Part shown: positions 3,509-30,161 of the stretch, piece by piece | Layout of the letters: the number at the start of each line of letters is the position of its first letter | How positions within the stretch are numbered: position 1 is the stretch's first letter | Source: Macrostomum hystrix | Taxonomy: Eukaryota > Animalia > Platyhelminthes | DNA length: 64,000 bases | NCBI GenBank assembly: GCA_950097015.1 | Contig: CATNEN010000002.1 | Location: 7,316,001-7,380,000 of the forward strand | Direction: 5' to 3' | Program-made: the position numbers and the translations under genes | The notes under the pieces: generated by a model | The model's input: the letters and a program-made list of their open reading frames with translations, nothing else | The model's database searches: none | What the model was told of the DNA's origin: nothing

Positions 3509-3825
3509 GGCCGCGTTGGTTAGAGCCTAGGGCTCCCGACTTGAAGCTGGTCGTGGGTTCGATATTTCGTGACGGAACCACTGACACAATTTATGTCCTG
3601 TAGCAAGACACATAACTCTGTGGTGCTTCAGTTCACCCAGATGTTAAATGGATATATAGAATAAATATATATTTAATTTAGATGTATTTATATATAAAGC
3701 TATAATTGTATAATTGGGTATAATTGAGGGTTGCACTGGCGTCCCCCAATGCAGTCCATATATGGACTGATGAACAGCTAGCTATAACGAGCTATTAAAC
3801 CTTCAATTCAGATGCGTGCGGTCGC
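3509..3825 (+). mobile_element. tRNA-derived SINE, family B, with a CORE/MIR-like central domain
   Basis: A box TGGTTAGAGC and B box GGTTCGAT, then GTCCTGTAGCAAGACACATAACTCTGTGGTGCTTCAGTTCACCCAGATGTTAAATGG. This resembles the MIR CORE block as I recall it (GACCTTGGGCAAGTTACTTAACCTCTCTGTGCCTCAGTTTCCTCATCTGTAAAATGG). The 3' part is shared with 24212-24420. Confidence 0.65.
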
Positions 3826-4546
3826 CTAGCTGTCCGCAGCGATTCTGACGCAATTGGGTAGAAATGTGTGGTAGATGTGTGGTAGAAAATTTGATACCAA
3901 TTTGCATCCTACTTTGTGTTTCTTGCAAGCTATTTGGGTAGCGTAGTAGACGGTGGGTGAGCGAGACATGAGCAGGCTCTCAATTACCGGGTGAACGGAA
4001 ATCAGACAATTAATCAGGTAAGAAGTCAAAATGTTGACGTGATGAATTATTTTTCGCCTATTTTAATTGAGCTTACAGTCATTATTGGCATATAAGCCAG
4101 GCCACATTTTACGTTTAAGGAAACTCGTTTAATGTATATCTCTAATATAAAGCATTCTTTAAAGGACTTCTTGATCCCACACAAAAGAAGTATTGAATTT
4201 TTCGTGTTTTTAAGTCAATATATCATATTTTTGTCGCTTTGTCATCTCTGAATGCATTCGTGAAACACACACTCTTTATCTGAAGGGTTAATTTTGATAA
4301 ATGTTCAAAGTGACTAAAATGTTTAAAAACATTTGTTAACAAACGACCTTCAGAACTTACGGATTTAATAATTTTTGTGTTTGATGATTCTGCAGTATAA
4401 TATTTCAAACGTTCAAATTCCATTCTTACGCGCGGTAGTTTGTTGACTTCTATTACTCGCAGTATATATAGGTTTTTGAAGACTTAATATTTTTTTAATA
4501 CTATATTTTTGTATTTTAAAGCGAAAAAAGTTTTCTAGTATAAAAA

Positions 4547-7500: not shown

Positions 7501-8282
7501 AGCCAGGCGGGCCAGCTGGCGCATCATGAGCAGCATCGAGCAGAAGGAGGAGGGCAAGCCCGGCTCGGACAAAGTTGAGCTAGTTCGCAAATTTCGTAGC
7601 CAAGTTGAGAAGGAACTTAAACAGATCTGTGAGGACATCCTGGACGTGCTGGATAGTCATCTCATCCCCAGCGCTACCGTGGACGAGTCGCGCGTCTTCT
7701 TCTACAAGATGAAGGGCGACTACCTGCGCTACATGGCCGAATTCGCCACTGGCGCCGAGCGCAAGGAGGCCGCCGAGAACAGCCTGTCGGCTTACAAGAA
7801 TGCCACGGACATTGCCAACGCCCACCTGCCGCCAACTCACCCGATTCGCCTCGGCCTAGCCCTGAACTTCTCCGTGTTCTACTACGAGATTCTCAACTCG
7901 GCCGACCGGGCCTGTCAGCTGGCCAAGACTGCCTTCGATGAGGCCATCGCCGAGCTGGACACCCTGTCCGAGGATTCCTACAAGGACAGCACCCTGATCA
8001 TGCAACTGCTCAGGGACAACCTCACCCTGTGGACCTCGGACATGCAGACTGGTGACGGTGAGTTGGAGACTAGTGGCCGCCAGTTCAGAGTTAGACAGTC
8101 AGGTGGTATTGTTACTTATTATTGTGTTTTTTATGCCTCAGCCCTGTTTTACGCGTATAACGGCATTGTTGAAATGATTAGAATTTATGTATTATCCGCA
8201 CGGCATCTTGAGCCCGGCACAATACAAACTTATGCCTCGCATTGCAGAAGAGAAAGAGGGCGACAAAGACTCCGGCAACTAA
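4547..8282 (+). CDS. YWHAE: 14-3-3 protein, epsilon type; exons 4547-4616, 7404-8057, 8248-8282; 252 aa
   Basis: Exon 1 reads [24 protein letters not shown]|gtatgt. Exon 2 carries [40 protein letters not shown] and [22 protein letters not shown]. Both introns are phase 1 GT-AG, and the spliced length is 759 nt ending [11 protein letters not shown]. Confidence 0.95.
5507..6159. mobile_element. Mutator (MULE)-type MITE in 14-3-3 intron 1
   Basis: Imperfect TIRs of about 50 bp (GGAAGTGCTTATTCCCACGGTCCC... / ...GGGACCGTGGGAATAAGCTCTGCC) with repeated subterminal motifs. 9-bp TSD TTTTCATAA at 5498-5506 and 6160-6168. No transposase ORF. Confidence 0.85.
6761..7074. mobile_element. hAT (Charlie/Buster-like) MITE in 14-3-3 intron 1
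   Basis: TIRs CAGGGGTCAGCAAACT / AGTTTGCCGACCCCTG and an 8-bp TSD TTGTAAAG at 6753-6760 and 7075-7082. The interior is a purine-rich simple repeat. Confidence 0.9.
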
Positions 8283-9489
8283 GAGGCTGCTCGATGGCCA
8301 ATTTAGAACTAGAAAACCTTGGAGTCCGTGTCGAATGAGAATGAGAAAGATGAACGTTTTTCTGACACAAATTTTCTGCTATACTACTAAGCTAGTAGAA
8401 CACTTGCGTAAGTTATTTATAAAATTCTTAAAATTGTTTTTTCTTCTATGCATTCTTCGATATAGTTTCCTTTCGAATGTCTCTTTAACTCTCAGAACAA
8501 CACTTGGACTTTTTTGTCCTTTCCCCCGTTTCTTCGAAATGCGTCTCATTGTAGCCGCTAATTTAATATTCTGAGGAATAGCTGTTGTGCGTGAAATAAT
8601 TTTTTGTTTATTATAAAACCAAATCGTTTTTGTTCGCAACAATACATCGTTACAATACAATTATTTTAGAAGCTTTTGTTAAGCTTGGAAGAGAGCACAT
8701 CTGAAACAGTTGATGAGCCAGAGAGTGTCCATTGTCCGTGTCTCAACCTAATCCCAGTGCATCATCATGCGTATTCCCTTCTATCCTGTCTCTTCAATTT
8801 TCTTATATTTTTTAGTTTACCAAAATTATTACTTTAAGAATGTTTTCTTTTTCTTTGAAGTTACACCATTTCTACACCAAATGTTGAGACTGCAGTTGGT
8901 GATCTCTCAGGCTGTGTGCCTATAGTAACTAAAATTTAATCGCAAACATACTTTGTTCTCTCTCTATGGACTCTATTAATAGAAATAGTTGTTATTATTA
9001 AGACATAGCTAGCTCTGTTTCTCTGTCCATGGCTGCCTGTAGAGCAGACTTAATTAGCTTCTTTTGCTGTTTCCTGGAAAAGGCCTTTTTAAACCCTGTT
9101 CTACAATAGCTAATAAATCCGGAAAATCGTGTTTTTATTTACAACAATCAAATAATAGACGCTATTCGTATACACTCGCGCAACAGAAATCGATAGTACA
9201 GGACATTTTTGACGCGCTGAACATCCAACTCACAGTTGCTTGCTGCCTGTTCTCTTTTAGCTCCGAGTGAGCAGTAGCTTAATGTAATAGAACAATAAAT
9301 AAAATACTGAACATCCACGTGGAAGTACGTCGCGCTGTTACTATTAAAACAAAAGTTGTAGTTCTTAATCCAGCTTTTTTGTCTCAAATTGATTTGTTGT
9401 TGCTATTAGAAAAGCCAATCTATAGTCGCTCCATTCCACCTAAGGGATGGACTTCAGACATCCTTTCGACACGAAGAAATAAATATTAA

Positions 9490-9781
9490 ATAATGTTTGC
9501 AGAAGGGGCACATCATTTGGTGACACTAGACACGCAGCCATCTAGGAGGCAATTCTGCCAGTTTCGCTGACTTCTGAGCACTCACACAGCGGTATCTACC
9601 CTGACTTCCTCATCGTTAAAAAGTGTACTTTTTCACTGTGCCTTGGAGATTGCCTCAAGAGCGTAAATTGCACAAGCCCCCAAGCCTTCACTCCGCGGCT
9701 GCGCCCCAAATGAATGAGGCCTCGAATCGATCTCAGTGACCTTGGTGCGAGAGGCGAACGCGATAAACGCTCAGCCACTCA
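9490..9781 (-). mobile_element. SINE family A, diverged copy
   Basis: Colinear with 414-750 (CCCCCAAGCCTT...CCGCGGCTGCGCCCCAAAT...GGTGCGAGAGGC), with indels. Confidence 0.85.
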
Positions 9782-10554
9782 TTCTCCTAGACATGCAGGG
9801 GTAAGTATTTTACTGCAACTGGAGGACTAAGCCAAGTCATTTAAACTAAGATAACTTATTTACCGCATCAAAAGGATGCGGTTCCTGGCTTCTAATTGTC
9901 ATGCACTCACATTTTGCTGTCAGTAGCAAGATGCGCTTGTTTGATGTTATAGTGATGCCAGACACATTTTGTTTTCCCAGGACTTCAGCCTAATATGGCT
10001 GAAGGTATTCCAGCGCCCATGCAGCGGGACTTTTACCTGGAATCCCCACATTCAGCATTTGCTAAATTCTGAAATGAAAGAGGGAAAATATGAGGGTAGG
10101 TAAGTCTGCCGCAATGTTTTCACAGACTATTTTGTCCAGAAATATTTAAGTGTCCATGTGGCTTAGCCGAGGGCATGACTGAGTTTCAAACGGCAGCGAT
10201 TCGGAAACTTTTAGAAATTATTGCCTTAAAAAGAAAAAAGTTGTTTACCACGGGTTTACCAGAGGATGCGACTTTTAAAAGCAGAAAAAATTCCAGATTT
10301 TAGAGCAATGGCAAGGGTAGCAACAGTTGAATTTACAGGCTTTAGTTGCTGGGCCAGGAAAATCTGAAAACCTGTCCGAGACAACGAGTCGACATAAAAA
10401 CTTTTATTTGAGCGACAAATAATCATAAGAAATGAGTTCACTGAACTGGCTGTTCTCAATCTAAACACCAATTATCAGCCCCTGACTTCCTGTTATGAAT
10501 GGTCGTAAATTGCAGAATTAGACCAATTTCAATCATGCGGACTAAGGGATACAA

Positions 10555-10620
10555 ATTGTTCCAGTGGAGTCAGCAATCGAACCCCTGACCTCTAGGTCGT
10601 GACTCCGACTGCGCAATTTG
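10555..10620 (-). mobile_element. Isolated tRNA-like SINE head fragment
   Basis: The minus strand reads GCAGTCGGAGTCACGACCTAGAGGTCAGGGGTTCGATT, which contains a B box. No full cloverleaf can be drawn. Confidence 0.35.
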
Positions 10621-11810
10621 CAGCATCCCAGACTATTGGACAAGAAGTCGGTAGTATCCGAATTCAAACTTTTTTTTCTCGTCATGGCAGCCATAACCGT
10701 AGCAGATGGGTCCCAATCAAATTTGGGTGCCGCTGCACTTGGAAGGCCTTGGTACAGTCATCCATCATTGCATGCAGTCTAATATTCTGAAATCCATCTG
10801 CTTCTTTAGTAGGCTAGGCTTATGATTGTGCGCGAGCATCTGTGCTAAAGTTGGAATGCGCCCCATCACCTGGCCAATATGCCTAAAATGGGTCAGTCGC
10901 CGAGAAAGCAGTGATGGGGCGGAGACTGCATGCAATAATCTGGTGTGCAGCAGGATTGGGTTCCAGAATGGGCAGAATGGGCCTCCGTAGATCACGTTTT
11001 TATAATTTGCGTCACAGTTCCAAGGTACACTATGTAGCAGCGCTGTTTGTAGATTCTGTGTTTGGCCTTTTATGACACAACAGCCGCCGGATCCCAGTGC
11101 GACCTGGGTACATTGTGCGAGTCAACGTGTATTGCTTTGTCAAATCTTGTCAGTTATTTTAGAAATTCAAATCAGTAATACTTAAATACGTAATCAATCA
11201 ATAACTCAAGCATGTACTTCTCTAGCTCTGCGCCCAGTCGGCAACATTTACGTGCAGAAGAAATCAATTTCGCTCGTAAATACATTTGTTTAGAAAATGA
11301 AAAAATGTGGGGTAAAAGTTCGACCTTTAGCCGCGACGCTATCGCTGTGCAGGAGCCGAAATCTGCAAATACGAGCTCGTACCATACAAGGCTATGCACC
11401 AGGCAAATCATTCAGCATATGCCCACACATCGAATTATTTGCTATTTTAAAGTGACTCTTTTAACTAAATATTACAGATGTGGATGGCTTCAGCTCTGAA
11501 TTGCGTTTCATGCCTAGCCTCGCAAATATCCCAGAACTAGTGTAGTGAAACTCCTGCGCAATTTCCCCTTGCCCACAACCCCATCCCATCTGTCCCTCCT
11601 CTAGCTGATCCACCAATGTTTCAAGTTGGCCTTCCGTCTGCAGTGGCAGATCAACAATCTAGTCCGTATGGTTATTATTCTGTGCAATGGGCTGCTGCTA
11701 ACACTTCTGGCGTAGTTCATTGATGAAATTTAAGCCACCTCTGTTTCTAAGCAAAATTCGGAATTCGGAATTTCAATTTGAATCTAGAATTGTCTAAATT
11801 CGCCATAGGA

Positions 11811-12262
11811 ACAGGTGAATCCCTATTGCTTCAGTGGTAATCACAGGTGAATCCCTATTACTTCAGTGGTAATCACAGGTGAATCCCTATTGCTTCAGTT
11901 GTAATCACAGGTGAATCCCTGATGCTTCAGTGGTAATCACAGCTGAATCCCTATTGCTTCAGTGGTAATCACAGGTGAATCCCTATTGCTTCAGTGGTAA
12001 TCACAGGTGAATCCCTATTGCTTCAGTGGTAATCACAGGTGAATCCCTATTGCTTCAGTGGTAATCACAGGTGAATCCCTATTGCTTCAGTGGTAATCAC
12101 AGGTGAATCCCTATTGCTTCAGTGGTAATCACAGGTGAATCCCTATTGCTTCAGTGGTAATCACAGGTGAATCCCTATTGCTTCAGTGGTAATCACAGGC
12201 GAATCCCTGATACTTCATTGGGGTCTCAGGTGAATCCCAGATTGCTTTAGTGGGGTCACAGG
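11811..12262. repeat. 32-bp minisatellite, about 14 copies
   Basis: Unit ACAGGTGAATCCCTATTGCTTCAGTGGTAATC. Confidence 0.95.
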
Positions 12263-13073
12263 TATGTTTTTCGACCTTTAAATGATCATATCGCTTCAGG
12301 CCATGCAAAATTGTTTCTACTCGTATATTCAATATAAAAATGACTTCTTAAGGTACATATAAAAAACATCCCATCTAAGCACTGCGCCCAGTCTGCAACA
12401 TCTTTCTGCTGCAGACGAAACAGGGCAAGGTGAAAGTTTAGCACTGAACAGCGGCTGCAGGGCCGTGGCTGACTGACTGGCTGATCCACAACTGGCTCTG
12501 CTTTGGACATCGGTGAAACTGGGACACAGAAGAGAGGCAGATTATGCATCTGCAAATCCTTCAGGCGCCTCTGCTGCCTTCCTTCCGGGAAGAGGGGGGC
12601 ATTTTTAACTGCGTTGCCGACTTTCTCTCCCCTCTGTTTCGTTTCGCGGGTTGGGGTGTTGTGGCCGCGGTGTACGCGCTGAAGCTCCCCCAGGTGCGGA
12701 GGCTGCGGAAAGATCAGCCAGGTAAAGAGAATTCGGAGGGCCATAGAATCTCTAGAGTGGAAGCAAATTGTTTGGGAAAGTCTCGGACACAGCCAGTTGG
12801 GATTGCGAAGATAGAAATTGCCCGCATCAGAATTCGACTTCCCCTCTGCCGCTCCGCCACCCACCCCTTCCTCCGAGCCCCCAGAAATCTTCCCAAATCC
12901 CGAGGACGTTGGTTGCAAAGTCTTCTTGCGCACATATTCCATAGGACAGATTTTCTGCTGCAATGTGCCGCTAATCTTAGATGCGAAAGCACTGAAAGCC
13001 CTTGCTATCTTGTGGATCCCATCTAGCGGGAAGCCTTCATCATCGGTTGTTGAAGGAGATCAAGCTCTAAATA

Positions 13074-16000
13074 ATGTTACTCAGGTGAGTTTGTAGCTTC
13101 TTTCATTTTGCTGCTTTATTAAAGTTTCATTTTGAAATCAACTTCTGGCTCTGCAGGTCCCAGTTGAGTTCATTCCTCTGCCTGGCAGTGCTTGTTGGCT
13201 GCTCATATGGCCAGGTAATTGTTCTGCATGATCTCTATTAGCTTCTGCCATGATTGGTCATTCTGGAAATTGTCCTCCGTGCTGTTCGCGTCATTTCAGG
13301 CCAAGAACTGCAGCTCCGTGTGCCTCAACGTCAACTGCCGGTGTGACAAGGGCGAGCGGGTGAGACCTTTTCAATAATTATAACCCAAGCTGAACCAATT
13401 GTGACCCAAGCTGAACCAATTATAACCCAAGCTGAACCAATTGTGACCCAAGCTGAACCAATTATGACCCAAGCTGAACCAATTGTGACCCAAGCTGAAC
13501 CAATTATGACCCAAACTGAACCAATTGTGACCCAAGCTGAACCAATTATGACCCAAGCTGAACCAATTGTGACCCAAGCTGAACCAATTGTGATCCAAGC
13601 TGAACCATAATGACCCAATCTGACCCCCAATGACTCAACCTGACTCATAATGACTCAACCTGACCCATAGTGACTCAACCTGACCCATAGTGATTCAACC
13701 AGACCCATAGTGACTCAACCTGACCCATTATGACTTAAACTGACCCATAATGATCCATACTGACTAACTATGACCTAAACTGGTCCATAATAGCTAAAAA
13801 TAATTGACAAAGACGTTGACTGACCCCGAATGGTCTTCGCCGACCCACAATTACCAAAAATGATCGGCGTGGGCCCAAAAGTTTTTGACCCAACCAACCG
13901 GATGAGGATCTACTTAATTTTTTGCGGACATATGCAGCCGATATCTTGGCTAGGATATTTCCATTCGCTATTCAACCGCAAAATCACAATTTCTTCGAAA
14001 TCAGGGTCCCCGAGGTCAACCCGGCTTCGCCGGAGTTCCCGGCAGCGTCGGACCGAGGGGTTCCTCCGGTGCCATCGGCTACACTGGAGAGTCCGGACCT
14101 CAGGGCGCCAAGGGCTCCTTCGGAGAGAAGGGAATCAAGGTGAGCACATTTGAAACTCCCGTCTCACAATGCTATTTCCTCATTCACGATGCCATTTCCT
14201 CATTCACGGTGCCATTCCGTGATCCACGATGCCATTTCCTCTTTCACGATGCCATTTCCTTATCACGATGCCATCTCCTCATTCACGATGCCATCTCCTC
14301 ATTCTCGATGCCATCTCCTCATTCACGATGCCATTTCGTGATCCATGATGCCATTTCCTTATAAGGAAATCCTTACATTTCTGAATGGTCATCGTAAAGT
14401 GTCGCTATAAGACTTAGCCCTAGTAAAGGGCTTGATAGGGGGTCAGTGGCAGAGCGGTTAACGCGTTTGCCTCTCGCACCTCGGTCCCTGAGCTCGATTC
14501 CACGGCGAGGCCACATTTATTTGGGGCGCAGCCGCGGAGAGAAGGCTTGGGGGCTTGCCGTGCAATTTACGCCCTTGAGGGCCAACCTCCATGTCACAGT
14601 GAGAGTGCACACTGCCTGACGATGAGAAAGTCAGGGCAGATGTACACACCTGTGTGAGCGTGTGCCTGCGTACAGTATCTGTGTGCGTGTGTGCTCAGGA
14701 GTCAGCGAAATGGGCAGAATCGCCTCCACGCTGGCTGTGGTTGTAGTGTCACTAAATGATAAGCTATTGTCTGCAGCCCTCCTGCAATTATTATTATGAT
14801 TAATCAGCTTGATTAAAACAAAACTTGTTTCTAAAATGATTTTCAGGGCGACCCTGGTCAGTCCGGCTATCCAGGCACTGCAGGCGAGGATGTGAGTCGG
14901 TGTGAATATTAAAGTCTTAAAGTACTTTTCGTACTTTTGCATTTCAGGAAAAATAAATTCTCTTGCCATTATATTTCTGACCAGGGTCTGCCGGGACTTC
15001 CCGGTGCCAAGGGTGACAAGGGCGATCGCGGCTGCGACGGCGAGCAGGTGAGCTTCGGGAGCACTTTCCCAGGATTATATTTGATTTCACCTGGTCCAAA
15101 TAAAGGTGCGAATTGACTTCGGTTTTCCTTCAGGGTCGAACTGGCGATGTCGGCGACAAAGGCGAGCGCGGATTCGACGGCGACCCGGGCCCAGACGGTC
15201 CGCCAGGCGACAAGGGCGACTCCAGCAGCGCTGCAGTCGGCACGAAGGGCGAGAAGGCGAGTCCTGATGAAAGATTTTTTCCTTAGGATTTCAAAAATTA
15301 GTCTGCTTTTTTTCATTTTTGACCAAAACTTCAGGGCTTCAGGGGCGCCGATGGTAGAAACGGCATCGACGGACCGCCTGGAGCTCAGGGTCCGCGCGGT
15401 GACACGGGCTTCAAAGGCTACCCCGGTCAGCAGGTGAGTAAGCTCTAAACAGTAAACTGTAAACAATAAACTGTAAACTGTAAACAGTAAACTGTAAACT
15501 GTAAACTGTAAACTGTAAACTGTAAACTGTAAACTGTAAACTGTGAATCATTGACTGTTAACTTGAGGGCGAACTCGGCAAACCAGGCGAAAAAGGCAAC
15601 ACCGGTCAACGTGGCGAGAAAGGCGATACTATTCCCGGCTACAAAGGTCAGCAGGGCGACAGCGGCCCGCTCGGAATTCAGTGCTCTACGGTGCAGCTCA
15701 AAGTGCCTAAGGGCTCATTTATGAACATTAACAGGACAATGCAGGGACCAAAGGGTGCCCAAGGCGAGAAGGTGAATTTGTAATTGCTTTGTTCGAAGAG
15801 ATTGAGTCCATCCCTACCTGTCCATCCCTACCTGTCCATCCCTACCTGTCCATCCCTTCCTGTCCATCACTACCTGTCCATCCCTACCTGTCCATCCCTA
15901 CCTGTCCATCCCTACCTTTCCATCCCTTCCTGTCCATCACTACCTGTCCATCCCTTCCTGTCCATCACTACCTGTCCATCCCTTCCTGTCCATCCCTACC

Positions 16001-19000
16001 TGTCCATCCCTACCTGTCCATCCCTTCCTGTCCATCACTACCTGTCCATCCCTACCTGTCCATCCCTACCTGTCCATCCCTACCTTTCCATCCCTTCCTG
16101 TCCATCACTACCTGTCCATCCCTTCCTGTCCATCACTACCTGTCCATCCCTTCCTGTCCATCCCTACCTGTCCATCCCTACCTGTCCATCCCTTCCTGTC
16201 CATCACTACCTGTCCATCCCTACCTGTCCATCCCTACCTGTCCATCCCTACCTTTCCATCCCTTCCTGTCCATCACTACCTGTCCATCCCTTCCTGTCCA
16301 TCACTACCTGTCCATCCCTACCTGTCCATCCCTACCTGTCCATCACTACCTGTCCATCCCTTCCTGTCCATCACTACCTGTCCATCCCTACCTGTCCATC
16401 ACTACCTGTCCATCCCTTCCTGTCCATCCCTTCCTGTCCATCACTACCTGTCCATCCCTTCCTGTCCATCACTACCTGTCCATCCCTACCTGTCCATCCC
16501 TACCTGTCCATCCCTACCTGTCCATCCCTTCCTGTCCATCACTACCTGTCCATCCCTTCCTGTCCATCACTACCTGTCCATCCCTACCTGTCCATCCCTA
16601 CCTGTCCATCACTACCTGTCCATCCCTTCCTGTCCATCCTTTCCTGTCCATCACTACCTGTCCATCCCTTCCTGTCCATCCTTTCCTGTCCATCACTATC
16701 TTCCATCCCTACCTGTCCATCCCAACCTGTCCATCCCTTCCTGTCCATCACTACCTGTCCATCCCTTTCTGTCCATCACTACCGGTCCATCAATACCCAT
16801 CCCTTCCTGTCCATCACTACCTGTCCATCCCTACCTGTCCATCACTACCCGTCCATCTCTACCTATCCATCTCTACCTATCCATCTCTGCCTGTCTATCT
16901 CTACCTGTCCATCTCTACCTGTCAATCTCTACCTATCCATCTCTACCTGTCTATCTCTATCTGTTATTCTTTACCTGTCCATCTTTACCTGTCCATCTCT
17001 ACCTGTCCATCCCTAACGGTCCATCTCTACCTGTCCATCACTACCCGTCCATGAATACTTGTCCATCACTACCTGTCCATATCTACCTATCTATTTCTAC
17101 CTGTCCTTTTCTACCTCTCAATCAATACACTACCTGTCCATCTCTTCTTGTCTATCTGTTTATCTACCTGGATGCAAAATTATCAATTTATCAACGCCAC
17201 CTTGCAGGGAGATAGCGGCGAGCCCGGTGAAAAGGGACCTCCTGGCGAGAAGGGCCAAACCGTAAGAAACCTGAAATCGGTTTATTAAAAAACGCTATTC
17301 TCTCTACTGCTAGTAGATCTGTCAGCATTCTAACTGAAACGTCAAGTGCAAAATAGTCAATTTTTGTCAATCTTCTTTTACTCAAGGGCAAGGACGGAAC
17401 TTCGGGTTCGGACGGACCGCCGGGACCTCCGGGAACTTCCGGTCCGAAGGGACTGGCCGGAGTGAAGGGCGATAAGGGCGACAAAGGAGAAACAGTGAGG
17501 ATTCGATTTGGCAGTTCTCGAATGTTTATGACCTAATTATTTCAATATTTGGCTAACTATTTTCCCAAGCCCGCTTATATACTCGCCACCTATTTCCCAA
17601 CCCTTCCCAAGTCGCAACTTCCCTGACTCGCATTTAGATTAATCAAGCGAGATCCCTATTAATCCCTATTCACAGAGCATAACTTATCCCAAGTGAATCC
17701 CAGCTTAAACTTATATCGAAACTTATCCCCTCCAGATCCAAATTTATTATATCTAAATGACAACTTATTACATTGACATCATGCATTATTGGAATTAGAT
17801 CCCAAATTATCCCATCCGAATCCCAAATTATCCCATCCGAATCTCAAATTATCCCATCCAAATCCCAACTTATCCCATCCAGATCCCAACTTATCCCATC
17901 CAGATCCCAACTTATCCCATCCAGGTCCCAACTTATCCCATTCAGATCCCAACTTATCCCATCCAGATCCCAACTTATCCTATCCAGATCCAAATTGATC
18001 CCACCCAGCTTCAATATCCTAAATTTAGCCCAGCCTATCGCCGTACAAATCCTAAGGGAACAGACGGTCGTCCGGGTCCTGAAGGCGCCAAAGGCCAGCA
18101 GGGCCCGAAGGGCATCAAGGGCGTCCACGGCAAGGACGGCAGCTCCGGCCAGACGGGTCCAAAAGGCTTCTCCGGTCCAGACGGTGTCTGCGCCAACATC
18201 TCCGGCTCAGCCGGCGACAAGGGCAACGACGGCCGGGCTGGCGAGAGCGGCGAGAAGGGCATCGCCGGGCCAGGGGGGCCGCAGGGTCCGAAGGGCCGAC
18301 CTGGACAAACCGGACTGAAGGGCGATCCGGGCAGCGACTGTCGGGACGGTGTCAAAGGCCTGGAAGGCGACAAAGGCGACCCGGGACCGAAGGGCTACAG
18401 GGGCGGGCCGGGCCGGCAGGGCGACCAGGGCGAGAAGGGCGTTCGCGGCGACAAGGGCGATCGCGGCGTTGGACAGAGAGGCGACCCCGGCCCGAAAGGC
18501 ATCTTTGGAGAATTCGGGCGGCAGGTGAGGCTTTTCAGCGGATGCAGAGGATGTACTTTTATGGGAGTGTGGGGTGCGAGGCGGCCGTGCCATGATTGGG
18601 TCTTTGATTTTAAAGGGGTCTGAGCCACCATTGAAGTGTAAATTTGTAGGGGGCTGAGCCACCATTGTGGTGTGATTTTGTAGGGGGCTGAGCCACCATT
18701 GAAGTGTAATTTTGTAGGGGGCTGAGCCACCATTGAAGTGTAATTTTGTAGGGGCTGAGCCACCATTGTGGTGTGATTTTGTAGGGGGCTGAGCCACCAT
18801 TGCGGTGTGATTTTGTAAGGGGCTGAGCCACCATTGCGGTGTGATTTTGTAAGGGGCTGAGCCACTGTTGGGGTGTGATTTTGTAAGGGGCTGAGCCACT
18901 GTTGGTGTGTGATTTTTTAAAGGGCTGAGCCACTGTTGGGGTGTGATTTTGTAAGGGGCTGAGCCACTGTTGGGGTGTGATTTTGTAAGGGGCTGAGCCA

Positions 19001-22000
19001 CTGTTGGTGTGTGATTTTGTAAGGGGCTGAGCCACTGTTGGTGTGTGATTTTTTAAAGGGCTGAGCCACTGTTGGGGTGTGATTTTGTAAGGGGCTGAGC
19101 CACTGTTGGGGTGTGATTTTGTAAGGGGCTGAGCCACTGTTGGTGTGTGATTTTGTAAAGGGCTGAGCCACTGTTGGGGTGTGATTTTGTAGGGGGCTGA
19201 GCCACCATTGAAGTCGCCAAAATCGCCCAAACTGATTGCAGGGCGATCGCGGACCGACTGGTGAGAAGGGCGACAACGGCGACAGTTTGCAGGGCTACGC
19301 TGGGCCGCCCGGCCAGATGGGACCCCTTGGTGATCGGGGGCCGCAGGGCAAGCAAGGACGCGACGGCGACAAAGGCAGCAACGGCAGCCTGGGTTGGTGC
19401 AGCCGCATCACCTGCAGCCAGGGCGAACGTGGCGACCTGGGACCAAAGGGAGACAATGGCGAGAAAGGCGACTTGGGGCCCAGAGGAATAATCGGAGACA
19501 AGGGCGAGAATGGCAGCCGCGGCGTAAAGGGAGAGAAAGGCGACGTCGGACCGCGTGGCTTCCCTGTAAGCATCGGGAAATTTTTCGGCGAATCGGCGAG
19601 AGTCTAAAATTATGCACTTTAATAGTACAATGAAAGATCGAATCTCATATTTTTCAGGGCGAAACCGGCGTTTTTGGCGACAAAGGTAGAAAGGGCTTCC
19701 CGGGTCCGGACACAGTTCTGCAGCTCGATCTATTGAAAGGTGCGAAATCTCATGTGCCAGCGGGATCGGCGTCACAGATTTTTGCAACTGACGACTCATT
19801 ACCCACTCAATTTGCAGGTCAGAAAGGTGAGACTGGCCTGAAGGGCCAGAACGGCACCCTCGGCGACAAGGGCAACAAAGGTATTGATGGCCCTCGTGGG
19901 CGAAAAGGCTACACCGGATTCAAGGGCGAGAAGGCGAGTTTTAAACGGCTTTATCGCCCTACCATGCAGCCTCACCATAAGATCTCATCCTCACAATCAG
20001 ATCCCACCTCATCCTCATAATCAGATCCCATCTCAATCAGATCCCACCTCATCCTCATAATCAGATCCCATCTCAATCAGATCCCATCTCATTCTCATAA
20101 TCAGATCCCATCTCAATCAGATCCCATCTCATCCTCATAATCAGATCCCATCTCATCCTCATAATCAGATCCCATCTCATCCTCACAATCAGATCCCACC
20201 TCATCCTCATAATCAGATCCCATCTCAATCAGATCCCATCTCATCCTCATAATCAGATCCCATCTCAATCAGATCCCATCTCATCCTCATAATCAGATCC
20301 CATCTCAATCAGATCCCATCTCATCCTCATAATCAGATCCCATCTCATCCTCATAATCAGATCCCATCTCATCCTCACAATCAGATCCCACCTCATCCTC
20401 ATAATCAGATCCCATCTCAATCAGATCCCATCTCATCCTCATAATCAGATCCCATCTCAATCAGATCCCATCTTATCCTCATAATCAGATCCCATCTCAT
20501 CCTCATAATCAGATCCTATCTCATCTCATGCCATTGCTTCTCATCTCCCAGGGCATCGATGGAATCCCTGGTCGTGACGGAATCGATGGCGCCAAAGGCG
20601 ACAACGGATCCAAGGGTAGCCAGGGCGAGAAAGGCGAGCCCGGCTTCGCCATGTCCGGAGCCATCGGACGGGCCGGTCCTTCGGGCCGCCCCGGCGACAA
20701 AGGCGAGCCGGGCCTCAAGGGCGCCGACGGACAGAGGGGCGACCGCGGCGACACGGGCGATCTGGGCGAGAAAGGCGAACGAGGCACCGACGGCGTTCGC
20801 GGCGACAAGGGCGAGTCGGGCCTGATGGGTCGGCGAGGCAAAAAGGGCGAGACTGGACCGATTGGTCCCCAGGGTGACAAGGGCGATCTCGGCGATAAAG
20901 GCATTCGCGGCGACAAGGGCAGCCTGGGCGAGGCTGGCTTTGACGGCGAAAAAGGCGCCAACGGCACCAAAGGCGACACTGGTGACAACGGCGAAAAGGG
21001 AAACGCTGGTGTGTACTGAAATGTACAATGTAACGAACAAAAGCCAATGAATGAGTGTGCGTCTGATCAGGTTAAAAATCTCTTATTTATAACTAGCTCG
21101 GCCATAGACTAAACGTTTCTTTAAACTCAGAGTAGAAAAGTCGGCCACAGCCTACGCAAGAGGTAAAGAAATTTGTTCTCATGATCACTGTACGCGTGAG
21201 TGTGTACTCGGACTCAGACTACTAAATTACTGAGCCTAAATAAAAATAGGCTCAGTAAAGTCTTTTGTTGAGGCCAGATCCACGGTCTACTGAACATAAG
21301 GCAATGTGCAGTGCACAATCTACACTTATAAGTTCGATTCTCCCTTCAAGTCACGATTAATTTCGGGACTTGTTGGAGGGTTTGGACAGTAGCGACCGGC
21401 GGAGGTGCACCATATTTCGTGCAATCAAAGCTTGAAATAATAGCTTCGCTCCTGCCTTCTGTGTGCCTGTTCTGCGTTGTGTGAGTTGTGTGCGTTGGCG
21501 CTGGGGCGTGAGGCCTTGCGGGGTGGTTGGGGGCGGGTGTACACCGCCGCGCGCTTTCTGGACTTCCGTCAGCGCGATTGGATAAGTGTACACCCATCAC
21601 CCGCCCCCCCTGAGGACTGATTTCTTATCAGCCTTCCGCCCCCGGCTTGGTCTGCTCTGTGCGTGTGGGGCTGGGGTGGGGGGGCACTGCTGCCTATTCT
21701 GGGTGCCTTTTGCCCTCCCCGGCTGGTCTGTGCTGCTGTGTGTGGTGCCTGCTCAGGGGAGGCGGCGCGATGGGCACTAAGCGCCTAGTTCGCCGGTCTG
21801 GGGGCGTGCCGCTCCGTCGCTTGTGCGACAAGTGCCCCGGGCCCCCCTGCAAATAGATAGATAGATAGATGGGAGAAAAATTGTGCTCAACAGCAAGACA
21901 CTTAAGTTGTTAGTAGCTAGGGCAGAAAGTCCATGGACTGATCGTCAGAGAAACACATACAAGATAAATGAGTTCTTTTTTAGGCTTACTTGGCGAGGTC

Positions 22001-25000
22001 GATCAGATAGTCCACCTGATCTCCGTAGCCTTCTTCGCCTTAAAATTAGGAAATTTTTCAAGATTCAGATAAAAAAGACGCGTTGTTATTTCTAGGAAAC
22101 GCATGGATGCTTTTAAGAATATTTTTAGCTTTCTATAAAAGACCGTGTAGATTTTTAGATATGTTTACAGGACTTATGATGGCAATTAGGTTTCTTAGAA
22201 TGATCAGGATTTTTTAAGAAAGACTATTTTAACAAAAACACCATAAAGTTTCTAAGAAACACAATAACGTGTGTTATCCTGCCGGGCCCCCCTGCAAATA
22301 GATAGAGAAAGGCGAGCCCGTAAAAGTGAAAAGGCCACACTATTTTCCCCACTGGGCTATTTCAAATGCCCACTGCCTGCTTCTCGACAGCTCCCAAACC
22401 GAATGACCGATTTTCGTGAAAGTCCACCATATAGATCTCATAGGCAAATTCATATTGAATAAAAAAATACCAATATAATAAATACAAAATGATCAGCATC
22501 AGCAACAATAGCCGACATGGTTACACGATGAAACTTTGAGAGCAGAAAAGGCATGCCTATATTGGTGGTTTAGCCACCAGACAACCCAACAAGAATCATC
22601 GAATATCTCAAAGATTCAATGTTCTGTGATTCTGGAAGCAGTTTCATCGGGTAGAGTGGAAAATTTTGCCTATGCCGTGGATTTTCATGGTGATAGGTTG
22701 AAAACTTTAGGATATACAGGAAAAAGAAAAATGTGTGCATTCGAAAATGTCTTGGGACATTTGCATATTGGGACAAGAACTATTTGCATACATACATTGC
22801 ATAAGTACGTTGATCCCACCGCTGCCGCCAAGGTCCCCGAGGTCGAGCTGGCGATGCAACCACCGGCGTCAAGGGTGAGAAAGGCGTGCAGGGCTTCCAG
22901 GGTCTGAAGGGCACCACCGGCGATAAAGGCTTTAAAGGTGACAGCGGCGTTCCCGGCGTGAACGGCTCAAAGGGCGACAAGGGAGACAAGGGCGAGCGCG
23001 GAGTCAAGGGCGACACTGGCGCCACTGGCGACAAGGGCATCAAAGGCGAGCTGGCCGAGAAGGGCGAGAAAGGCGTGGCCGGACCGCGCGGACCAACTGG
23101 CGAGGTTGGCGAGAAGGGCATTCAAGGAATGCCGGGCAAGCCGGCGCACTGCAAGAGCCTCGGCCCGGAAGGCCGGCAGGGCGTGAGGGGCCCGATGGGA
23201 CCAAAAGGCTCCAACGGCGCCAAGGTATTTGAAATCTTCTTTCAATTCTTGTCTCTATTTAACGAGCAGTTTTCTTTGCATAAATCAGTTTACCGAACCG
23301 TCTGACAGGGCGATGTTGGTCCGAAAGGCTCCAAAAGCGACAAAGGTTCAACTGGTCCGCAAGGCCGAGTTGGCGACACTGGCGACAAGGGCGACATCGG
23401 ACCGAAGGGCTTCCAGGGTGAAATGGGTCCGACTGGCGAGAAGGGCGTTCAGGGCGAGACTGGCGATCAGGGACCGCAAGGCCTGATCGGACCGAAGGGA
23501 CCAGTTGGCGACCTGGGACCCAAGGGCGAGCAGGGACCGATCGGCGAGAAGGGCATGCAGGTGCGCAGGGGTGATTGGGTGGTTTCTAGGGTGGTTTCTA
23601 CGACTCTGAACTTGATTACGTGGCGAGGCCACATTCGTTTGGGCCGCAGCCGCGGAGAGAAGGCTTGGGGGCTGGTCGTGCTATTTAGGCCATTGAGGGC
23701 CAACCCACAAGGCACAGTGAGTGTACACTGCCTGACGATTAGATGTTCACACCTGTGTGGTGTGTGCTAAGCTCTCAGCGGAATGGGCAGAATCGGCTCC
23801 TCGATGTCAATTTTAAATTCGAATTCTCTAACATTGTGCTTCCCTCTTCAAATCGTTCAGGGCCTCCCAGGCCGCGGTCTGAGAGGACCAAAAGGAGACC
23901 AGGGTCCAGTCGGTCCCGAAGGCTCGGTTGGTCCTCGCGGGCCGCTGGGCGAGCCGGGCAACCAGGGACCGCGCGGTCTGAACGGCGCTGGTCAGAAGGG
24001 CGTGAAAGGCGAGGTCGGGCCTCCGGGGCCGCTCGGACCCGACGGCAACGTCGGCCCGATGGGACCCAAGGGCGAGAAGGGCATCGCCGGAGCGGATGGA
24101 AAGCTTGGCCGGAAGGTGAGCAGAGCTCATCATTGCTCGTTACTTTATTATTTTGTATTTGGCTCTGAGTTTCAATGACTCGTTGTTTTGCTTCAGTATT
24201 TCAAGTGGAGTTGTTGCCTGGAAGTGGCGGACTCATGGCCTGATGGTTGGGGGTTCGATTCTTGACTCTCATCGAACAACTTTTGTTCTTTAGATAGAAA
24301 ATTAACTCTGTAAAGTGAAGCAGCTATGGTGATTGAGGGCGGGTGTGGTGTCCCTTCAGTCCATGGACTGGGCAGCCGTACGCAGCCTTCAGATGCGCTG
24401 CGCTTTCGCTGCCGCTGTGCTGTCGGCTGCGCGTCTGGCGCAACTGGGGCTGGTGTAATCAATTGATATTATTGTGTCTTTTCTTTTTCCTCAGGGCGAC
24501 CGCGGTCCCCAGGGCGACAAGGGCGTCAACGGCACTCTGGGCGAACGCGGTGACATTGGACCGAAGGGCGACAAAGGCAAAGTTGGCGAGATTGGCCGCG
24601 TCGGTGACCTGGGCGACAAGGGCGACACCGGGCAGAAGGGCGACTTCGAGAAGGGCAACCGGGGTGTCCCCGGCTCGAAGGGCGTCAAAGGTGAATTGGG
24701 AGTCAAGGGCGACGACGGTCCGAAGGGCGAGAAGGGCATCCAGGGCGGCGCCGGAAAGCTTGGCCGGAAGGGCGACAGAGGCGACACAGGGCCGAATGGA
24801 ACCGTCGGCGAGAGCGGCGAGAAGGGCCAGAAGGGCGAGACTGGCCTGTTTGGGCGCAGAGGCGACAAGGGCGACAAGGGCGACCGCGGCGAGAAAGGCG
24901 GCAAAGGACTCGACGGAGTGAAAGGCGATACCGGCGAGAAGGGCAACCACACGACGTGCGTGTCGGTGACGGGCTTGATGGGAGAGAAGGGCTTTCAGGG

Positions 25001-28000
25001 CGAGACTGGCAAGCAGGGAGACAAGGGCAGCCTCGGCAGGGTCGGTAAGTCAATGGGAATCTTTACGGTGTATTTCTGCGAGGAAAGGTGTCTTTATGGC
25101 AGTCAGGGTGTCTTTATGGCAGTCAGGGTGTCTTTATGGCAGTCAGGGTGTCTTTATGGCAGTCAGGGTGTCTTTATGGCAGTCAGGGTGTCTTTATGGC
25201 AGTCAGGGTGTCTTTATGGCAGTCAGGGTGTCTTGATGACATTATGACAGTCGGGTGTCTCTATGTTAAACATGGTGTCTTTCTGACAGCCAGGGTGTCT
25301 TTCATATCGGATGGGGTGTCTTAATGACAGTCAGGGTGTCTATCCACCGCAGGTGACACGGGTCCGAAGGGCTACAAAGGCGACACTGGAGACACTGGGG
25401 CGAACGGCACAACCGGCGACTCGGGTCCAACGGGTGCGCAGGGCGACAAAGGCGACAAAGGCGTCGCCGGCCGCGACGGAGTCGACGGCGCCGTCGGAGA
25501 GAAGGGAGTCAAGGGCGAGTCCGGCACGAAGGGAGACCGCGGCGACATTGGAGCCATGGGGGAGAAAGGCATCAAGGGAATGCCTGGTTAGTTTTTGTGT
25601 CAGAAGTATTGCAGATACGCAGTTCAGTTGATTCCCAATCAATTCTAAAAACGAATTTTCGCCACTTCAGGCGCTCTCGGCGCGAAGGGTAACAACGGCA
25701 CCACTGGACCCGTCGGGCAGAAAGGCGAGAAGGGCATGGACGGTGTTCTTGGAGTGAAGGGCGAGAAAGGCGACAATGGAACTGTTGGCAACATCGGAGA
25801 GAAGGGTGAGACAGGGAGTATTTTATCGGGGTAGAAAGTCAGTCGGGTAGAAAGTCAGTGGATAGAAAGTCAGTGGGTAGAAAGTGAGTAAGGGTAGAAA
25901 GTCAGTGGTAGTAGAGAGTCAGTAGGGGATAGAAATTCAGCAGGGGTAAAAAGCCACTAGGGGTAGAAAGCCAGTAGGCGTAGAAAGCCAGTAGGCGTAG
26001 AAAGTCAGTAGGGGTAGAAAGCCAGTAGGCGTAGAAAGCCAGTAGGCGTAGAAAGTCAGTAGGGGTAGAAAGCCAGTAGGCGTAGAAAGTCAGTAGGGGT
26101 AGAAAGCCAGTAGGGGTAGAAAGTCAGTAGGGGAAGAAAGTCAGTAGGGGTAGAAAGTCAGTAGGGGAAGAAAGTCAGTAGGGGTAGAAAGCCAGTAGGG
26201 GTAGAAAGTCAGTAGGGGAAGAAAGCCAGTAGGGGTTGAAAATCAGTAGGGGTAGAAAGTCAGTAGGGGTAGAAAGTCAGTAGAGGAAGAAAGTCAGTAG
26301 GGGTAGAAAGTCAGTAGGGGTAGAAAGTCAGTAGGGGTAGATAGCCAGTAGGGGTAGAAAGTCAGTAGGGGTAGAAAGTCAGTAGGGGTAGAAAGTCAGT
26401 AGGGGTAGAAAGTCAGCAGGTTGAAATTGCCGCAATTCGCAGGTTCCGGAGGCGAGATTGGCGAGAAGGGCCAGCCTGGTCGGAAGGGCATCGCTTTGAA
26501 GGGCGACTCCGGCCAAGTCGGCGAGAAGGGCGAGCCGGGCGCGGTCGGCGAGAAAGGCATCGTCGGCCTGCCGGGCAAGCAGGGCCGTCTCGGCTCGAAG
26601 GGCCCCATAGGCCCCCGCGGCGACCCCGGAGTCAGAGGACCGAAGGGCGAGAAGGGGCCTCAGGGAGAGCAGGGAGAGAACGGTGGCCAAGGCCCTCAGG
26701 GCGAGAAGGTGAGCTGACCCTGTGTCATAAACCAATGACCCATTGTCATGAACCAATGACCCACTGTCCTGAACCAATGAGCCACTGTCCTGAACCAATG
26801 ACCCACTGTCATAAACCAATGACCCACTGTCCTGAACCAATGACCCACTGTCCTGAACCAATGAGCCACTGTCCTGAACCAATGCCCACTGTCATTAACC
26901 AATGACCACTGTCATAAACCAATGACCCACTGTCCTGAACCAATGAGCCACTGTCCTGAACCAATGCCCACTGTCATTAACCAATGACCACTGTCATAAA
27001 CCAATGACCACTGTCATAAACCAATGACCCATTGTCATAAACCAATGACCCACTGTCCTGAACCAATGAGCCACTGTCCTGAACCAATGACCACTGTCAT
27101 AAACCAATGACCACTGTCATAAACCAATGACCACTGTCCTGAACCAATGAGCCACTGTCCTGAACCAATGCCCACTGTCATTAACCAATGACCACTGTCA
27201 TAAACCAATGACCACTGTCATAAACCAATGACCACTGTCCTGAACCAATGACCCACTGTCCTGAACTAATGCCCACTGTCATGAACCAATGACCCATTGT
27301 CCTGAACCAATGACCCACTGTCCTGAACCAATGAGCCACTGTCATGAACCAATGACCCACTGTCATGAACCAATGACCCACTGTCATGAACCAATGACCC
27401 ACTGTCCTGAACCAATGAGCCACTGTCCTGAACCAATGACCACTGTCATAAACCAATGACCACTGTCATAAACCAATGACCACTGTCCTGAACCAATGAC
27501 CCACTGTCCTGAACCAATGCCCACTGTCATTAACCAATGACCACTGTCATAAACCAATGACCACTGTCCTGAACCAATGACCCACTGTCCTGAACCAATG
27601 CCCACTGTCATTAACCAATGACCACTGTCATAAACCAATGACCCACTGTCCTGAACCAATGCCCACTGTCATAAACCAATGACCACTGTCATAAACCAAT
27701 GACCAATTGGTCCTGAACCAATGACCCACTGTCCTGAACCTATGACCTACTGTCCTGACCCAATCAGTGACCCAGTATCTTGATCCAATGACTCACTATC
27801 TTGACCCAATGACCCACTGTCCTGAACCTATCACCCACTATCTTGACCCAATGACCCACTATCTCGGCGACCCACTATCCTGACCTTATCACCTGCTATC
27901 TTGATCAAAGCATGGCACTATATGAACCCAATATTTCACTAATTATTTAACGACCCAATATTTATAAAAATAGCAGCAGTTTTATTCCGAACATTCCCAT

Positions 28001-30161
28001 AGACAGTGAGTTCCATAAATTTTCTTCTCTGAATGAATTCGCCGCTCCTTCCAGGGCAAGAAGGGCGAAACAGGTGACCAAGGTTACCAAGGACCCACCG
28101 GGCCGCTCAGCCCTGGCGGCACCATTTTCTCCTTCCACTCCATGAACACCACCCCGCCGGCCTGCCCGCCCGGCACGCGCGTGGTGCGTCAGGGCTACAG
28201 CTTCGTGGGGGCGGCTTCCGGCGGGCGCACCTGGGCGCAGGACATGGGTGAGTGAATTGTTGTGATTTGCGCTATTCCACAGCTCTTAAGAAGTTTCGCA
28301 CATCCTTTGACATAAGATATGGAAACAAGGAAAATATTGTAATTAGAAATACAAGGTGTGGAACGTAAAGATCAGGATTGGGATTATGATCGGGATCAGG
28401 ATTGGGATCAGGATTGGGATTATGATCGGGATCAGGATTGGGATCAGGATTGGAATTATGATCGGGATCAGGATTAGGATCAGAATTAGGATTATGATCG
28501 GGATCAGGATTGGGATCAGAATTAGGATTAGGATTGGGATTATGATTGGGATCTGAATTAGGATTAGGATCGGGATTGGGATTGGGATCAGAATTAGGAT
28601 TAGGATCGGGATTAGGATTGGGATCTGAATTAGGATTAGGATCGGGATCAGAATGAGATTAGGATCGGGATTAGGATCGGGATCAGAATTGTGATTATGA
28701 TTGGGATCAGAATAAGGATTAGGATCGGGATCAGAATGAGATTAGGATCGGGATCAGAATAAGGATTAGGATCGGGATCAGAATAAGGATTAGGATCGGG
28801 ATCGAATTAGGATTATAAGCACATAAGCACTCCGCCAACCCCTGTCGCAGGGTCCATGGGCTCATGCAAGGACAAATTCACCAGCATGCCGTTCATCCAG
28901 TGCGACGCCGAGCGCAGCTGTCACTATTCCAGCCGCAGCGAGCGCTCCTATTGGCTGGCAACCCGGGGTAAAACCCTGGCCAATCCGCTGCCGGTGGACG
29001 ATCCGCGGATCCGAGAGCAGGTGTCCCGCTGCTCCGTCTGCGACTGCCATTCGGCAGTGATCGCTGTGCACTCGCAGTCAGCCCTGCAGCCCGAATGCCC
29101 GCCAACCTGGGAGGAGATGTGGATTGGCTACAGCTTCCTCATGGTATGATTGGGAGATGTGGATTGGCTACAGCTTCCTCATGGTATGATTGGGAGATGT
29201 GGATTGGCTACAGCTTCCTCATGGTATGATTGGGAGATGTGGATTGGCTACAGATTCCTCATGGTATGATTGGGGGCTGTGGATTGGCTACAGCTTCCTC
29301 ATGGTATGATTGGGAGATGTGGATTGGCTACAGCTTCCTCATGGTATGATTGGGAGATGTGGATGTGGCTACAGCTTCCTCATGGTATGATTGGGAGATG
29401 TGGATTGGCTACAGATTCCTCATGGTATGATTGGGAGATGTGGATTGGCTACAGCTTCCTCATGGTATGATTGGGGGCTGTGATTTAAGTAGAGGATTTG
29501 GGATCTAAGATGAGCATTTGTGATCTACGCAGAGGATTTGGGATCTAAGTAGAGGATTTAGAATCTAAGCAGAGGATTTGGGATCTAAGTAGAGGATTTG
29601 GGATCTAAGTGGAGGATTTGGGATCTACGCAGAGGATTCGGGATCTAAGAATCTAATAATCTAAGGATCTAAGAAGAGGATTTGGGATCTAAGTGGAGGA
29701 TTTGGGATCTACGCAGAGGATTTGGGATCTACGCAGAGGATTTGGGATCTAAGTAGAGGATTTGGGATCTAAGTAGAGGATTTTGGATCGAAGTAGAAGA
29801 TTCGGGATCTAAGAATCTAATGATCTAAGGATCTAAGAAGAGGATAAGAATCGCATGAGCTCATCAACAGGATCCCTGATCCCCAAAAAATCGCCAGTTC
29901 ACAACGGGCGGCACGGGAAGCGGCCAGGACCTGGTGTCTCCGGGCAGCTGCCTTCCATACTTCAGCTTTAACCCGATGCTGGAGTGCAACAACCAGGGCG
30001 GTCGCTGCCACCACTGGCAGGACTCCATCACCTACTGGCTGTCCGTCATCCCGGAGGAAGCGATGTTCCAGAAGCCCCTGCCAACGTCGACGAGTTCTTA
30101 CTCGCTGGAGTCGAGTGTGTACAATCGGATCAGCCGCTGCAAAGTGTGCCGCAGGACTTAG
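13074..30161 (+). CDS. Type IV collagen alpha chain, 26 exons, 1746 aa (signal peptide, 7S, interrupted Gly-X-Y helix, NC1)
   Basis: Exons: 13074-13084, 13157-13214, 13300-13359, 14005-14139, 14847-14891, 14985-15047, 15134-15256, 15335-15433, 15568-15771, 17208-17261, 17387-17494, 18057-18524, 19242-19565, 19658-19739, 19818-19933, 20552-21008, 22833-23224, 23309-23560, 23861-24115, 24495-25044, 25353-25586, 25671-25805, 26443-26708, 28055-28247, 28851-29143, 29898-30161. All phases are compatible and the total is 5241 nt. The N-terminus is [44 protein letters not shown]. The two C4 repeats of NC1 carry all 12 canonical Cys (CPPGT...GYSF...QDMGSMGSC...WIGYSFLM...[10 protein letters not shown]...ISRCKVC). 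Alpha1 versus alpha2 type was not resolved. Confidence 0.93.
13375..13790. repeat. 21-bp minisatellite, collagen intron 3
   Basis: Unit GACCCAAGCTGAACCAATTGT, decaying toward the 3' side. Confidence 0.95.
14161..14361. repeat. Degenerate repeat of about 20 bp, collagen intron 4
   Basis: CACGATGCCATTTCCTCATT-like units. Confidence 0.85.
14438..14800 (+). mobile_element. SINE family A, full length, collagen intron 4
   Basis: Head GGGGGTCAGTGGCAGAGCGG, body matching 414-750, and tail CCTGCAATTATTATTAT. A possible short TSD GCTTGAT lies at 14430-14436 and 14807-14813. Confidence 0.9.
15447..15543. repeat. (TAAACTG)n, collagen intron 8
   Basis: 7-bp unit. Confidence 0.95.
15806..17150. repeat. 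14-bp minisatellite, collagen intron 9
   Basis: Units CTGTCCATCCCTAC / CTGTCCATCACTAC / CTGTCCATCCCTTC. This is the source of the spurious 410 and 421 aa ORFs. Confidence 0.95.
17806..18000. repeat. 21-bp minisatellite, collagen intron 11
   Basis: Unit CCCAACTTATCCCATCCAGAT. Confidence 0.9.
18618..19210. repeat. 34-bp minisatellite, collagen intron 12
   Basis: Unit GGGGCTGAGCCACTGTTGGGGTGTGATTTTGTAA, with a CACCATTG variant in the 5' block. Confidence 0.95.
19979..20525. repeat. Mixed 24/15-bp minisatellite, collagen intron 15
   Basis: ATCAGATCCCATCTCATCCTCATA and ATCAGATCCCATCTCA units, running into the acceptor tract. Confidence 0.95.
21350..21872 (+). mobile_element. Putative 3' fragment of a non-LTR retroelement or SINE with an (AGAT)n tail, collagen intron 16
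   Basis: GC-rich island in an AT-rich intron, ending CCGGGCCCCCCTGCAAATAGATAGATAGATAGA. The same terminus recurs at 22282-22306. The 5' boundary is uncertain. Confidence 0.4.
23610..23810 (+). mobile_element. SINE family A, partial, collagen intron 18
   Basis: GGCGAGGCCACATT...GCAGCCGCGGAGAGAAGGCTTGGGGG...GGGCAGAAT body; the head is missing. Confidence 0.85.
24212..24420 (+). mobile_element. SINE family B, diverged copy, collagen intron 19
   Basis: B box GGTTCGATTC, followed by ATTGAGGG...GTCCC...CAGTCCATGGACTG...TTCAGATGCG, shared with 3720-3820. Confidence 0.55.
25086..25340. repeat. 20-bp minisatellite, collagen intron 20
   Basis: Unit CAGTCAGGGTGTCTTTATGG. Confidence 0.9.
25826..26418. 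repeat. 17-bp minisatellite, collagen intron 22
   Basis: Unit GGGGTAGAAAGTCAGTA; decayed at the 5' end and homogeneous at the 3' end. Confidence 0.95.
26721..27900. repeat. 20/21-bp minisatellite, collagen intron 23
   Basis: Unit AACCAATGACCCACTGTCCTG / AACCAATGACCACTGTCATA. Confidence 0.95.
28370..28815. repeat. 6-bp-based repeat (GGGATC/AGGATT), collagen intron 24
   Basis: GATCAGGATTGG-like hexamer mosaics. Confidence 0.9.
29113..29483 (+). repeat. 40-bp tandem array made of the last 31 nt of collagen exon 25 plus its 5' splice site; 9 copies
   Basis: Unit GGAGATGTGGATTGGCTACAGCTTCCTCATG|GTATGATTG; copies start at 29113, 29153 and so on to 29433. Confidence 0.95.
29484..29846. repeat. 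20-bp minisatellite, collagen intron 25
   Basis: Unit GATTTGGGATCTAAGTAGAG. Confidence 0.9.

Follow-up and report, generated by a model that had tools for sequence, protein, structure and literature searches.

A 64,000-nucleotide stretch of the Macrostomum hystrix genome (assembly GCA_950097015.1, contig CATNEN010000002.1, positions 7,316,001 to 7,380,000 of the forward strand; hereafter the window) contains, on its plus strand, a collagen IV gene of about 17 kb, whose last two coding exons and the intron between them make up positions 28851-30161. The encoded chain ends in an NC1 domain that has neither of the two residues, equivalent to Met93 and Lys211, that are joined as Met93 and hydroxylysine 211 (Hyl211) in the canonical sulfilimine bond, which peroxidasin makes. 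The NC1 domain is spread over three exons (28055-28247, 28851-29143 and 29898-30161), all bordered by AG and GT and continuous in frame. In particular, the frame of exon 28851-29143 starts at 28853 and yields 97 residues, and exon 29898-30161 yields 87 residues followed by a TAG stop codon at 30159-30161. The features of the gene are:

13074..13084, plus strand: putative first coding exon, ATG TTA CTC AG followed by a GT donor, read from the sequence and presumably joined to the next two exons.
13157..13214, plus strand: putative signal-peptide exon, with AG/GT borders and a hydrophobic stretch of 17 residues.
13300..13359, plus strand: putative beginning of the 7S domain, holding a cluster of four Cys; the borders are AG/GT and the frame continues into the exon at 14005.
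14005..24115, plus strand: about 17 collagenous Gly-X-Y exons with Cys in the interruptions, an approximate model from a Gly-X-Y scan and splice-chain dynamic programming.
24495..26708, plus strand: four transcript-verified collagenous exons (24495-25044, 25353-25586, 25671-25805 and 26443-26708), with GT..AG joints, 0 letters differing from transcript contigs of runs X2 and X3, and an open frame.
28055..28247, plus strand: end of the helix and first NC1 exon, with the Cys20 equivalent and with the first HSQ changed to HSM, supported by the joints 26708/28055 and 28247/28851 and a Pfam C4 match.
28851..29143, plus strand: second NC1 exon, with the R-S-E motif, the Met93 loop, an extra Cys and the second HSQ, supported by Pfam C4, alignment to human alpha1 and identical transcript contigs.
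29898..30161, plus strand: last NC1 exon, with the E175 equivalent, the Lys211 loop and the TAG stop, supported by Pfam C4, alignments to human chains and identical contigs that run into the 3′ untranslated region.

Upstream of the NC1 domain, a scan of the window finds Gly-X-Y coding segments, often and briefly interrupted, between 14005 and 28108. The approximate full gene model has about 27 exons and 1692 residues and is open in frame throughout, with several uncertain junctions between 19658 and 23871; the X2 contig extends 3612 nt upstream of 24493, compared to about 3144 nt of coding sequence in the model. The transcript-verified portion comprises 7 exons with an intact open reading frame, including the C-terminal 410 residues of the helix. 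At the other end of the gene, a putative start codon, signal peptide and four-Cys 7S-like cluster can be spliced in frame at 13074-13359, and the cluster at 13300..13359, which is putative, resembles the canonical 7S Cys cluster. The first-pass annotation, made from the letters of the window, had described the helix as Cys-rich. The approximate model places about 8 Cys in about 1400 helix residues, all within interruptions, and such a count is unremarkable among collagen IV chains. Neither a second NC1 domain nor a head-to-head partner gene was found in the 64-kb window.

The gene is expressed. Spliced contigs from the public runs X2 and X3 join 26708/28055, 28247/28851 and 29143/29898; one contig is 5284 nt long and another 2177 nt long, and neither differs by a single letter from the genome over the NC1 exons. 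Since the spliced contigs match the exons exactly, the collagen IV gene is transcribed and is spliced as modelled over its NC1 exons. Over the Met93 loop, a contig from a second organism code is identical too. With the genome matched by transcripts from both organism codes, misassembly is rejected as an explanation of the extra Cys and of the missing Met.

Together, the three exons specify the NC1 domain at the C-terminus of a collagen IV alpha chain whose gene is intact and transcribed. Each exon was searched separately against databases and families, and the three-exon join was used locally for BLAST, for MAFFT alignment and for the tree. Pfam C4 (PF01413) matches the second exon (28851-29143, E = 1e-26) and the last exon (29898-30161, E = 9e-19), and it matches the first (28055-28247, E = 2e-05) at 25.3 bits, slightly under the cutoff of 27 bits. 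Among collagen IV NC1 chains of known structure, those from human, bovine and Drosophila are matched by the second exon with E values of 1e-33 to 1e-40 (1e-38 to 1e-40 for human and bovine), and by the last exon with E values of 1e-20 to 1e-24. Once exon 28055-28247 is included, all 12 canonical NC1 Cys are present, six in each C4 repeat. The first-pass annotation had counted all 12 within 28851-30161; the count is correct for the chain, although that interval holds only 11, because the first canonical Cys, the Cys20 equivalent, sits in exon 28055-28247. The domain has 13 Cys in total, and the additional one, which had been read as VCDCH, is indeed found at 29045-29047 (SVCDCH), after the CxxC and in the A113 column.

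R76 and E175 are the principal residues of the chloride-switch salt bridges, and N187 is restricted to deuterostomes (PMC4878091). In the M. hystrix chain, the R76 equivalent is kept within SSRSE, where the chloride-site motif reads R-S-E (28934-28942), as had been noted from the sequence, and the E175 equivalent is kept within MLEC. The N77-D78 pair reads S-E, in which the change of D78 to Glu is conservative, and N187 is replaced by Asp. Collagen IV is marked by an HSQ motif where each C4 repeat begins (PMC5395295); the second repeat keeps it, and the first has HSM instead (28109-28130). The C-terminus reads CKVCRRT, much as canonical chains end, and the stop codon follows 3 residues past the last canonical Cys.

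Two other identities were considered and rejected. Spongin short-chain collagens have a short helix, seven shared and three spongin-specific Cys, and no HSQ (PMC5395295), whereas this gene has a helix of about 1400 residues, the full collagen IV set of Cys and the second HSQ. A ctenophore-like identity is rejected by the Cys pattern, the HSQ and a C-terminus that has no Cys loop.

Both sulfilimine residues are missing from the domain. Loop 1, from SYWL to SRC, is 22 residues long (28958-29023), the same length as in human alpha1, and the two align without a gap: human PMPMSM(93)AP lies over KTLANPLP, and the Met93 column holds Pro (28985-28987). As the first-pass annotation had stated, none of the 22 residues is Met. 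Loop 2 is 19 residues long (30075-30131), 4 residues longer than in human (PTPSTLKAGELRTHV), and alignments to human chains confirm that it has no Lys at the TLKAG position or elsewhere, including the 18 residues between KP and SRC. The K211 column holds Ser, or Leu when counted back from the Cys; the sole Lys nearby is the conserved one in FQKP, and the one Met of loop 2 is the universally conserved Met201 equivalent. The human motifs used for comparison, quoted earlier as PMPMSMAP and STLKAG, agree with the PDB sequences, and the alignment against solved human NC1 that had been proposed as a check finds neither a Met93 nor a Lys211 equivalent. Because both residues are absent from otherwise well-conserved loops, the chain can form no part of a canonical Met93-Hyl211 sulfilimine bond.

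Compared to the human and bovine alpha1 and alpha2 NC1 domains (PDB 1LI1, 1M3D and 5NAY), the M. hystrix domain shares the two C4 repeats, the 12 Cys, the R76 and E175 equivalents, the second HSQ and, with alpha1, the length of loop 1; beyond NC1, the chain has, like human and bovine collagen IV, a long Gly-X-Y helix with interruptions, and a putative Cys cluster near its N-terminus. It differs in the change of Met93 to Pro, in a Lys-free Lys211 loop with 4 added residues, in the change of N77-D78 to S-E and of the first HSQ to HSM, and in the extra Cys.

When 1.8 billion representative proteins were scanned in full by HMMER, the second NC1 exon had 746 matches, and relatives were drawn from the best 150 of these. 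The closest named relative among them is a Macrostomum lignano 'Collagen IV NC1 domain-containing protein' (UniRef100_A0A1I8FP35, P0003), with 57% identity across the second NC1 exon and 53% across the part of NC1 that both have; identity to the best full NC1 relatives is about 45%. A maximum-likelihood tree pairs the chain with P0003 (SH-aLRT, an approximate likelihood-ratio test, of 98) on a long stem, with an unnamed metagenome protein, P0062, as their sister. By its nearest named relative, the chain probably belongs to a Macrostomum-like, free-living flatworm. The chain and P0003 have in common a motif of 12 to 15 residues, the HSM, the R-S-E and a loop core of LANPxPVxDP; P0003, unlike the M. 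hystrix chain, carries Met at 89, 94 and 102 (not at 93) and has no extra Cys, and its gene model, partly out of frame, ends before the Lys211 loop. The canonical Met93/Lys211 pair is also absent from P0062. Word searches of protein collections used a piece of the second exon and, in two length classes, the NC1 portion of P0003; no match exceeded 53% identity. An exact look-up of P0003 found no contig. An alignment of the full-length approximate model to P0003 was uninformative, as the P0003 model is partly out of frame.

The sulfilimine bond has been described as reinforcing the collagen IV scaffold in a way that is critical and conserved from cnidarians to humans (PMC13098435), and its absence from individual chains already has precedents. 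The planarian Schmidtea mediterranea has seven col4 genes, of which col4-3 alone is without the sulfilimine Met and hydroxylysine and the six sister chains keep them (PMC8072372). Hydra, whose collagen IV has no sulfilimine residues, is cited as the sole exception among cnidarians and bilaterians (PMC5395295), and the chains of all ctenophores have no Met93 or Lys211 and carry a C-terminal Cys loop in place of the bond (PMC5395295). The loss of these residues from single chains is thus already known, and the M. hystrix chain is a further, transcribed flatworm example. By published description, it resembles col4-3, another flatworm collagen IV chain, which is reported to have neither residue (PMC8072372). 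With Hydra it shares a eumetazoan origin and the absence of the residues; Hydra differs in being a cnidarian and, in the cited text, an exception at the level of the species, compared to the one bilaterian chain examined here. The ctenophore Group II chains likewise have no Met93 or Lys211, and they differ in having an NC2 domain and, at the C-terminus, a Cys loop (11-13 residues, 3-4 Cys), in contrast to the M. hystrix chain, which has no extension (PMC5395295). A literature search for Macrostomum collagen IV or basement membrane found nothing relevant.

Further, both loops could be read in 60 sequences (59 database proteins and the M. hystrix chain): 34 have both residues, 17 have neither and 9 are mixed. 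The named chains with neither residue are paralogues from the amphioxus Branchiostoma, the fish Oryzias latipes and the stingray Hypanus sabinus. Since 17 of the 60 sequences have neither residue, paired loss in individual chains is recurrent, and the named examples suggest that it may recur in chordates as well. The excess of concordant states also supports the view that Met93 and Lys211 form a functional pair whose members are kept or lost together. In a motif scan, the Branchiostoma sequences P0034, P0075 and P0117, Oryzias P0007 and Hypanus P0009 show no Met near 93; P0034, P0117, P0007 and P0009 show no Lys near 211 either, and P0075 is readable for loop 1 only.

The favoured interpretation, in which we place moderate confidence, is that the gene encodes an intact, transcribed collagen IV chain whose sulfilimine partners were lost, most likely from this chain specifically and within a fast-evolving flatworm lineage, like planarian col4-3. 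Such a chain would keep what is required for the fold, for the NC1 trimer and for the head-to-head hexamer, namely a pair of C4 repeats, enough canonical Cys (12) for six disulfides, the HSQ of the second repeat and counterparts of R76 and E175, and its N-terminal 7S-type Cys cluster is apparently kept as well. It can form no sulfilimine weld across the trimer-trimer interface. Hexamers that contain it would be held non-covalently, by chloride and salt bridges, and/or by cross-links through partner chains that keep the residues; the strength of the network would come from lateral contacts and from the 7S end, which is probably still available for cross-linking.

The six sister chains of Schmidtea that keep the residues (PMC8072372) and the 17 of 60 sequences that have neither both speak for a chain-specific loss. 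Loss from one chain says nothing of the network if the partner chains keep the residues; of the seven Schmidtea chains, col4-3 alone has lost them (PMC8072372). Four points weigh against this interpretation. The specificity to one chain would be carried over from other flatworms, and the contacts at the hexamer interface are assumed from homology. The only named Macrostomum protein among the best 150 matches is of the same divergent type. Finally, no head-to-head collagen IV partner gene lies within 13 kb upstream (positions 1-13000 of the window).

The loss might, with low probability, extend to the whole organism: the lineage would have given up sulfilimine cross-linking as Hydra has, no chain would carry Met93 and Lys211, and peroxidasin would have been lost or repurposed. 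Hydra is a published precedent for such a loss (PMC5395295). Within the clade formed by the M. hystrix chain, P0003 and P0062, no member has the canonical pair, and no canonical NC1 labelled Macrostomum is found among the best 150 of the 746 matches. However, most of these matches carry no taxon label and 30 were looked up, and P0003 keeps a Met at 94, adjoining the canonical site. Planarians also argue against it, as six of their seven chains keep the residues (PMC8072372); the flatworm ancestor therefore had the sulfilimine bond. A stronger form of the proposal, which we consider rather unlikely, is that macrostomids are a bilaterian lineage without peroxidasin-sulfilimine reinforcement, in which all collagen IV chains are divergent and share LANPxPVxDP as a conserved replacement loop.

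The distinction between chain-specific and lineage-wide loss determines how much the finding matters. Sulfilimine-free chains and animals show how far basement-membrane strength can rest on chloride-dependent non-covalent assembly together with 7S cross-links, and the M. hystrix chain joins the published exceptions of Hydra, ctenophores and planarian col4-3. The finding gains importance only if the bond is missing throughout the lineage, and Macrostomum is a laboratory model in which this can be tested. A lineage-wide loss, if true, would amount to a knock-out made by nature in a bilaterian, one that regenerates and is a tractable model, and the bond concerned is called essential from cnidarians onward in the literature.

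The first-pass annotation had gone further and proposed a network held by another chemistry. A replacement covalent link, for which the extra Cys (29045-29047) or the helix Cys would form intermolecular disulfides, or another Met/Lys pair would meet at the interface, is quite improbable. The odd number of NC1 Cys would leave one unpaired if the six canonical disulfides form, the ctenophore Cys loop does substitute for the sulfilimine bond (PMC5395295), and other candidate residues exist: loop 1 has a Lys in column 88, and Met occupies columns 47 and 50 (column count in the MAFFT alignment). However, the extra Cys occurs in none of the 182 equivalent linkers of database relatives and is absent from P0003, the closest relative; it is therefore not a conserved device. 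By the pseudo-symmetry of the C4 repeats in published structures, it should also face the helix side of the trimer and not the hexamer interface. Loop 2 offers no Met other than the Met201 equivalent, and a C-terminal Cys-loop extension is absent. These results lend no support to the proposed alternative chemistry, and under the favoured interpretation, a chain-specific loss, the M. hystrix chain would have no replacement bond of its own.

Decay of the chain, or its retasking outside basement-membrane networks, for example as a soluble or tissue-specific matrix protein, is very improbable, since the chain's long branch, its identity of only about 45% to the best full NC1 relatives, the change of the first HSQ to HSM and the lack of a nearby head-to-head partner gene are set against an open reading frame that is intact over the 7 transcript-verified exons and open through the rest of the approximate model of about 27 exons, transcripts in several runs, and the retention of the fold-critical Cys, R76, E175 and the 7S-like Cys cluster.

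The gene is also rich in minisatellites, one of which overlaps the end of the second NC1 exon:

29113..29482, plus strand: minisatellite with a 40-bp unit, 9.2 copies and 96% matches, covering the exon end and the splice donor (Tandem Repeats Finder).

Each 40-bp unit consists of the last 30 bases of the exon together with the GT donor, which creates about nine donor sites in tandem; transcripts use only the first of them (29143/29898). Nearly all introns of the collagen gene (13376-29845) are filled, each by a minisatellite of its own, with periods of 21 (13376-13754), 14 (15806-17106), 34 (18605-19205), 17 (25828-26420), 21/81 (26715-27860), 6/12/36 (28370-28815) and 20 (29482-29813).

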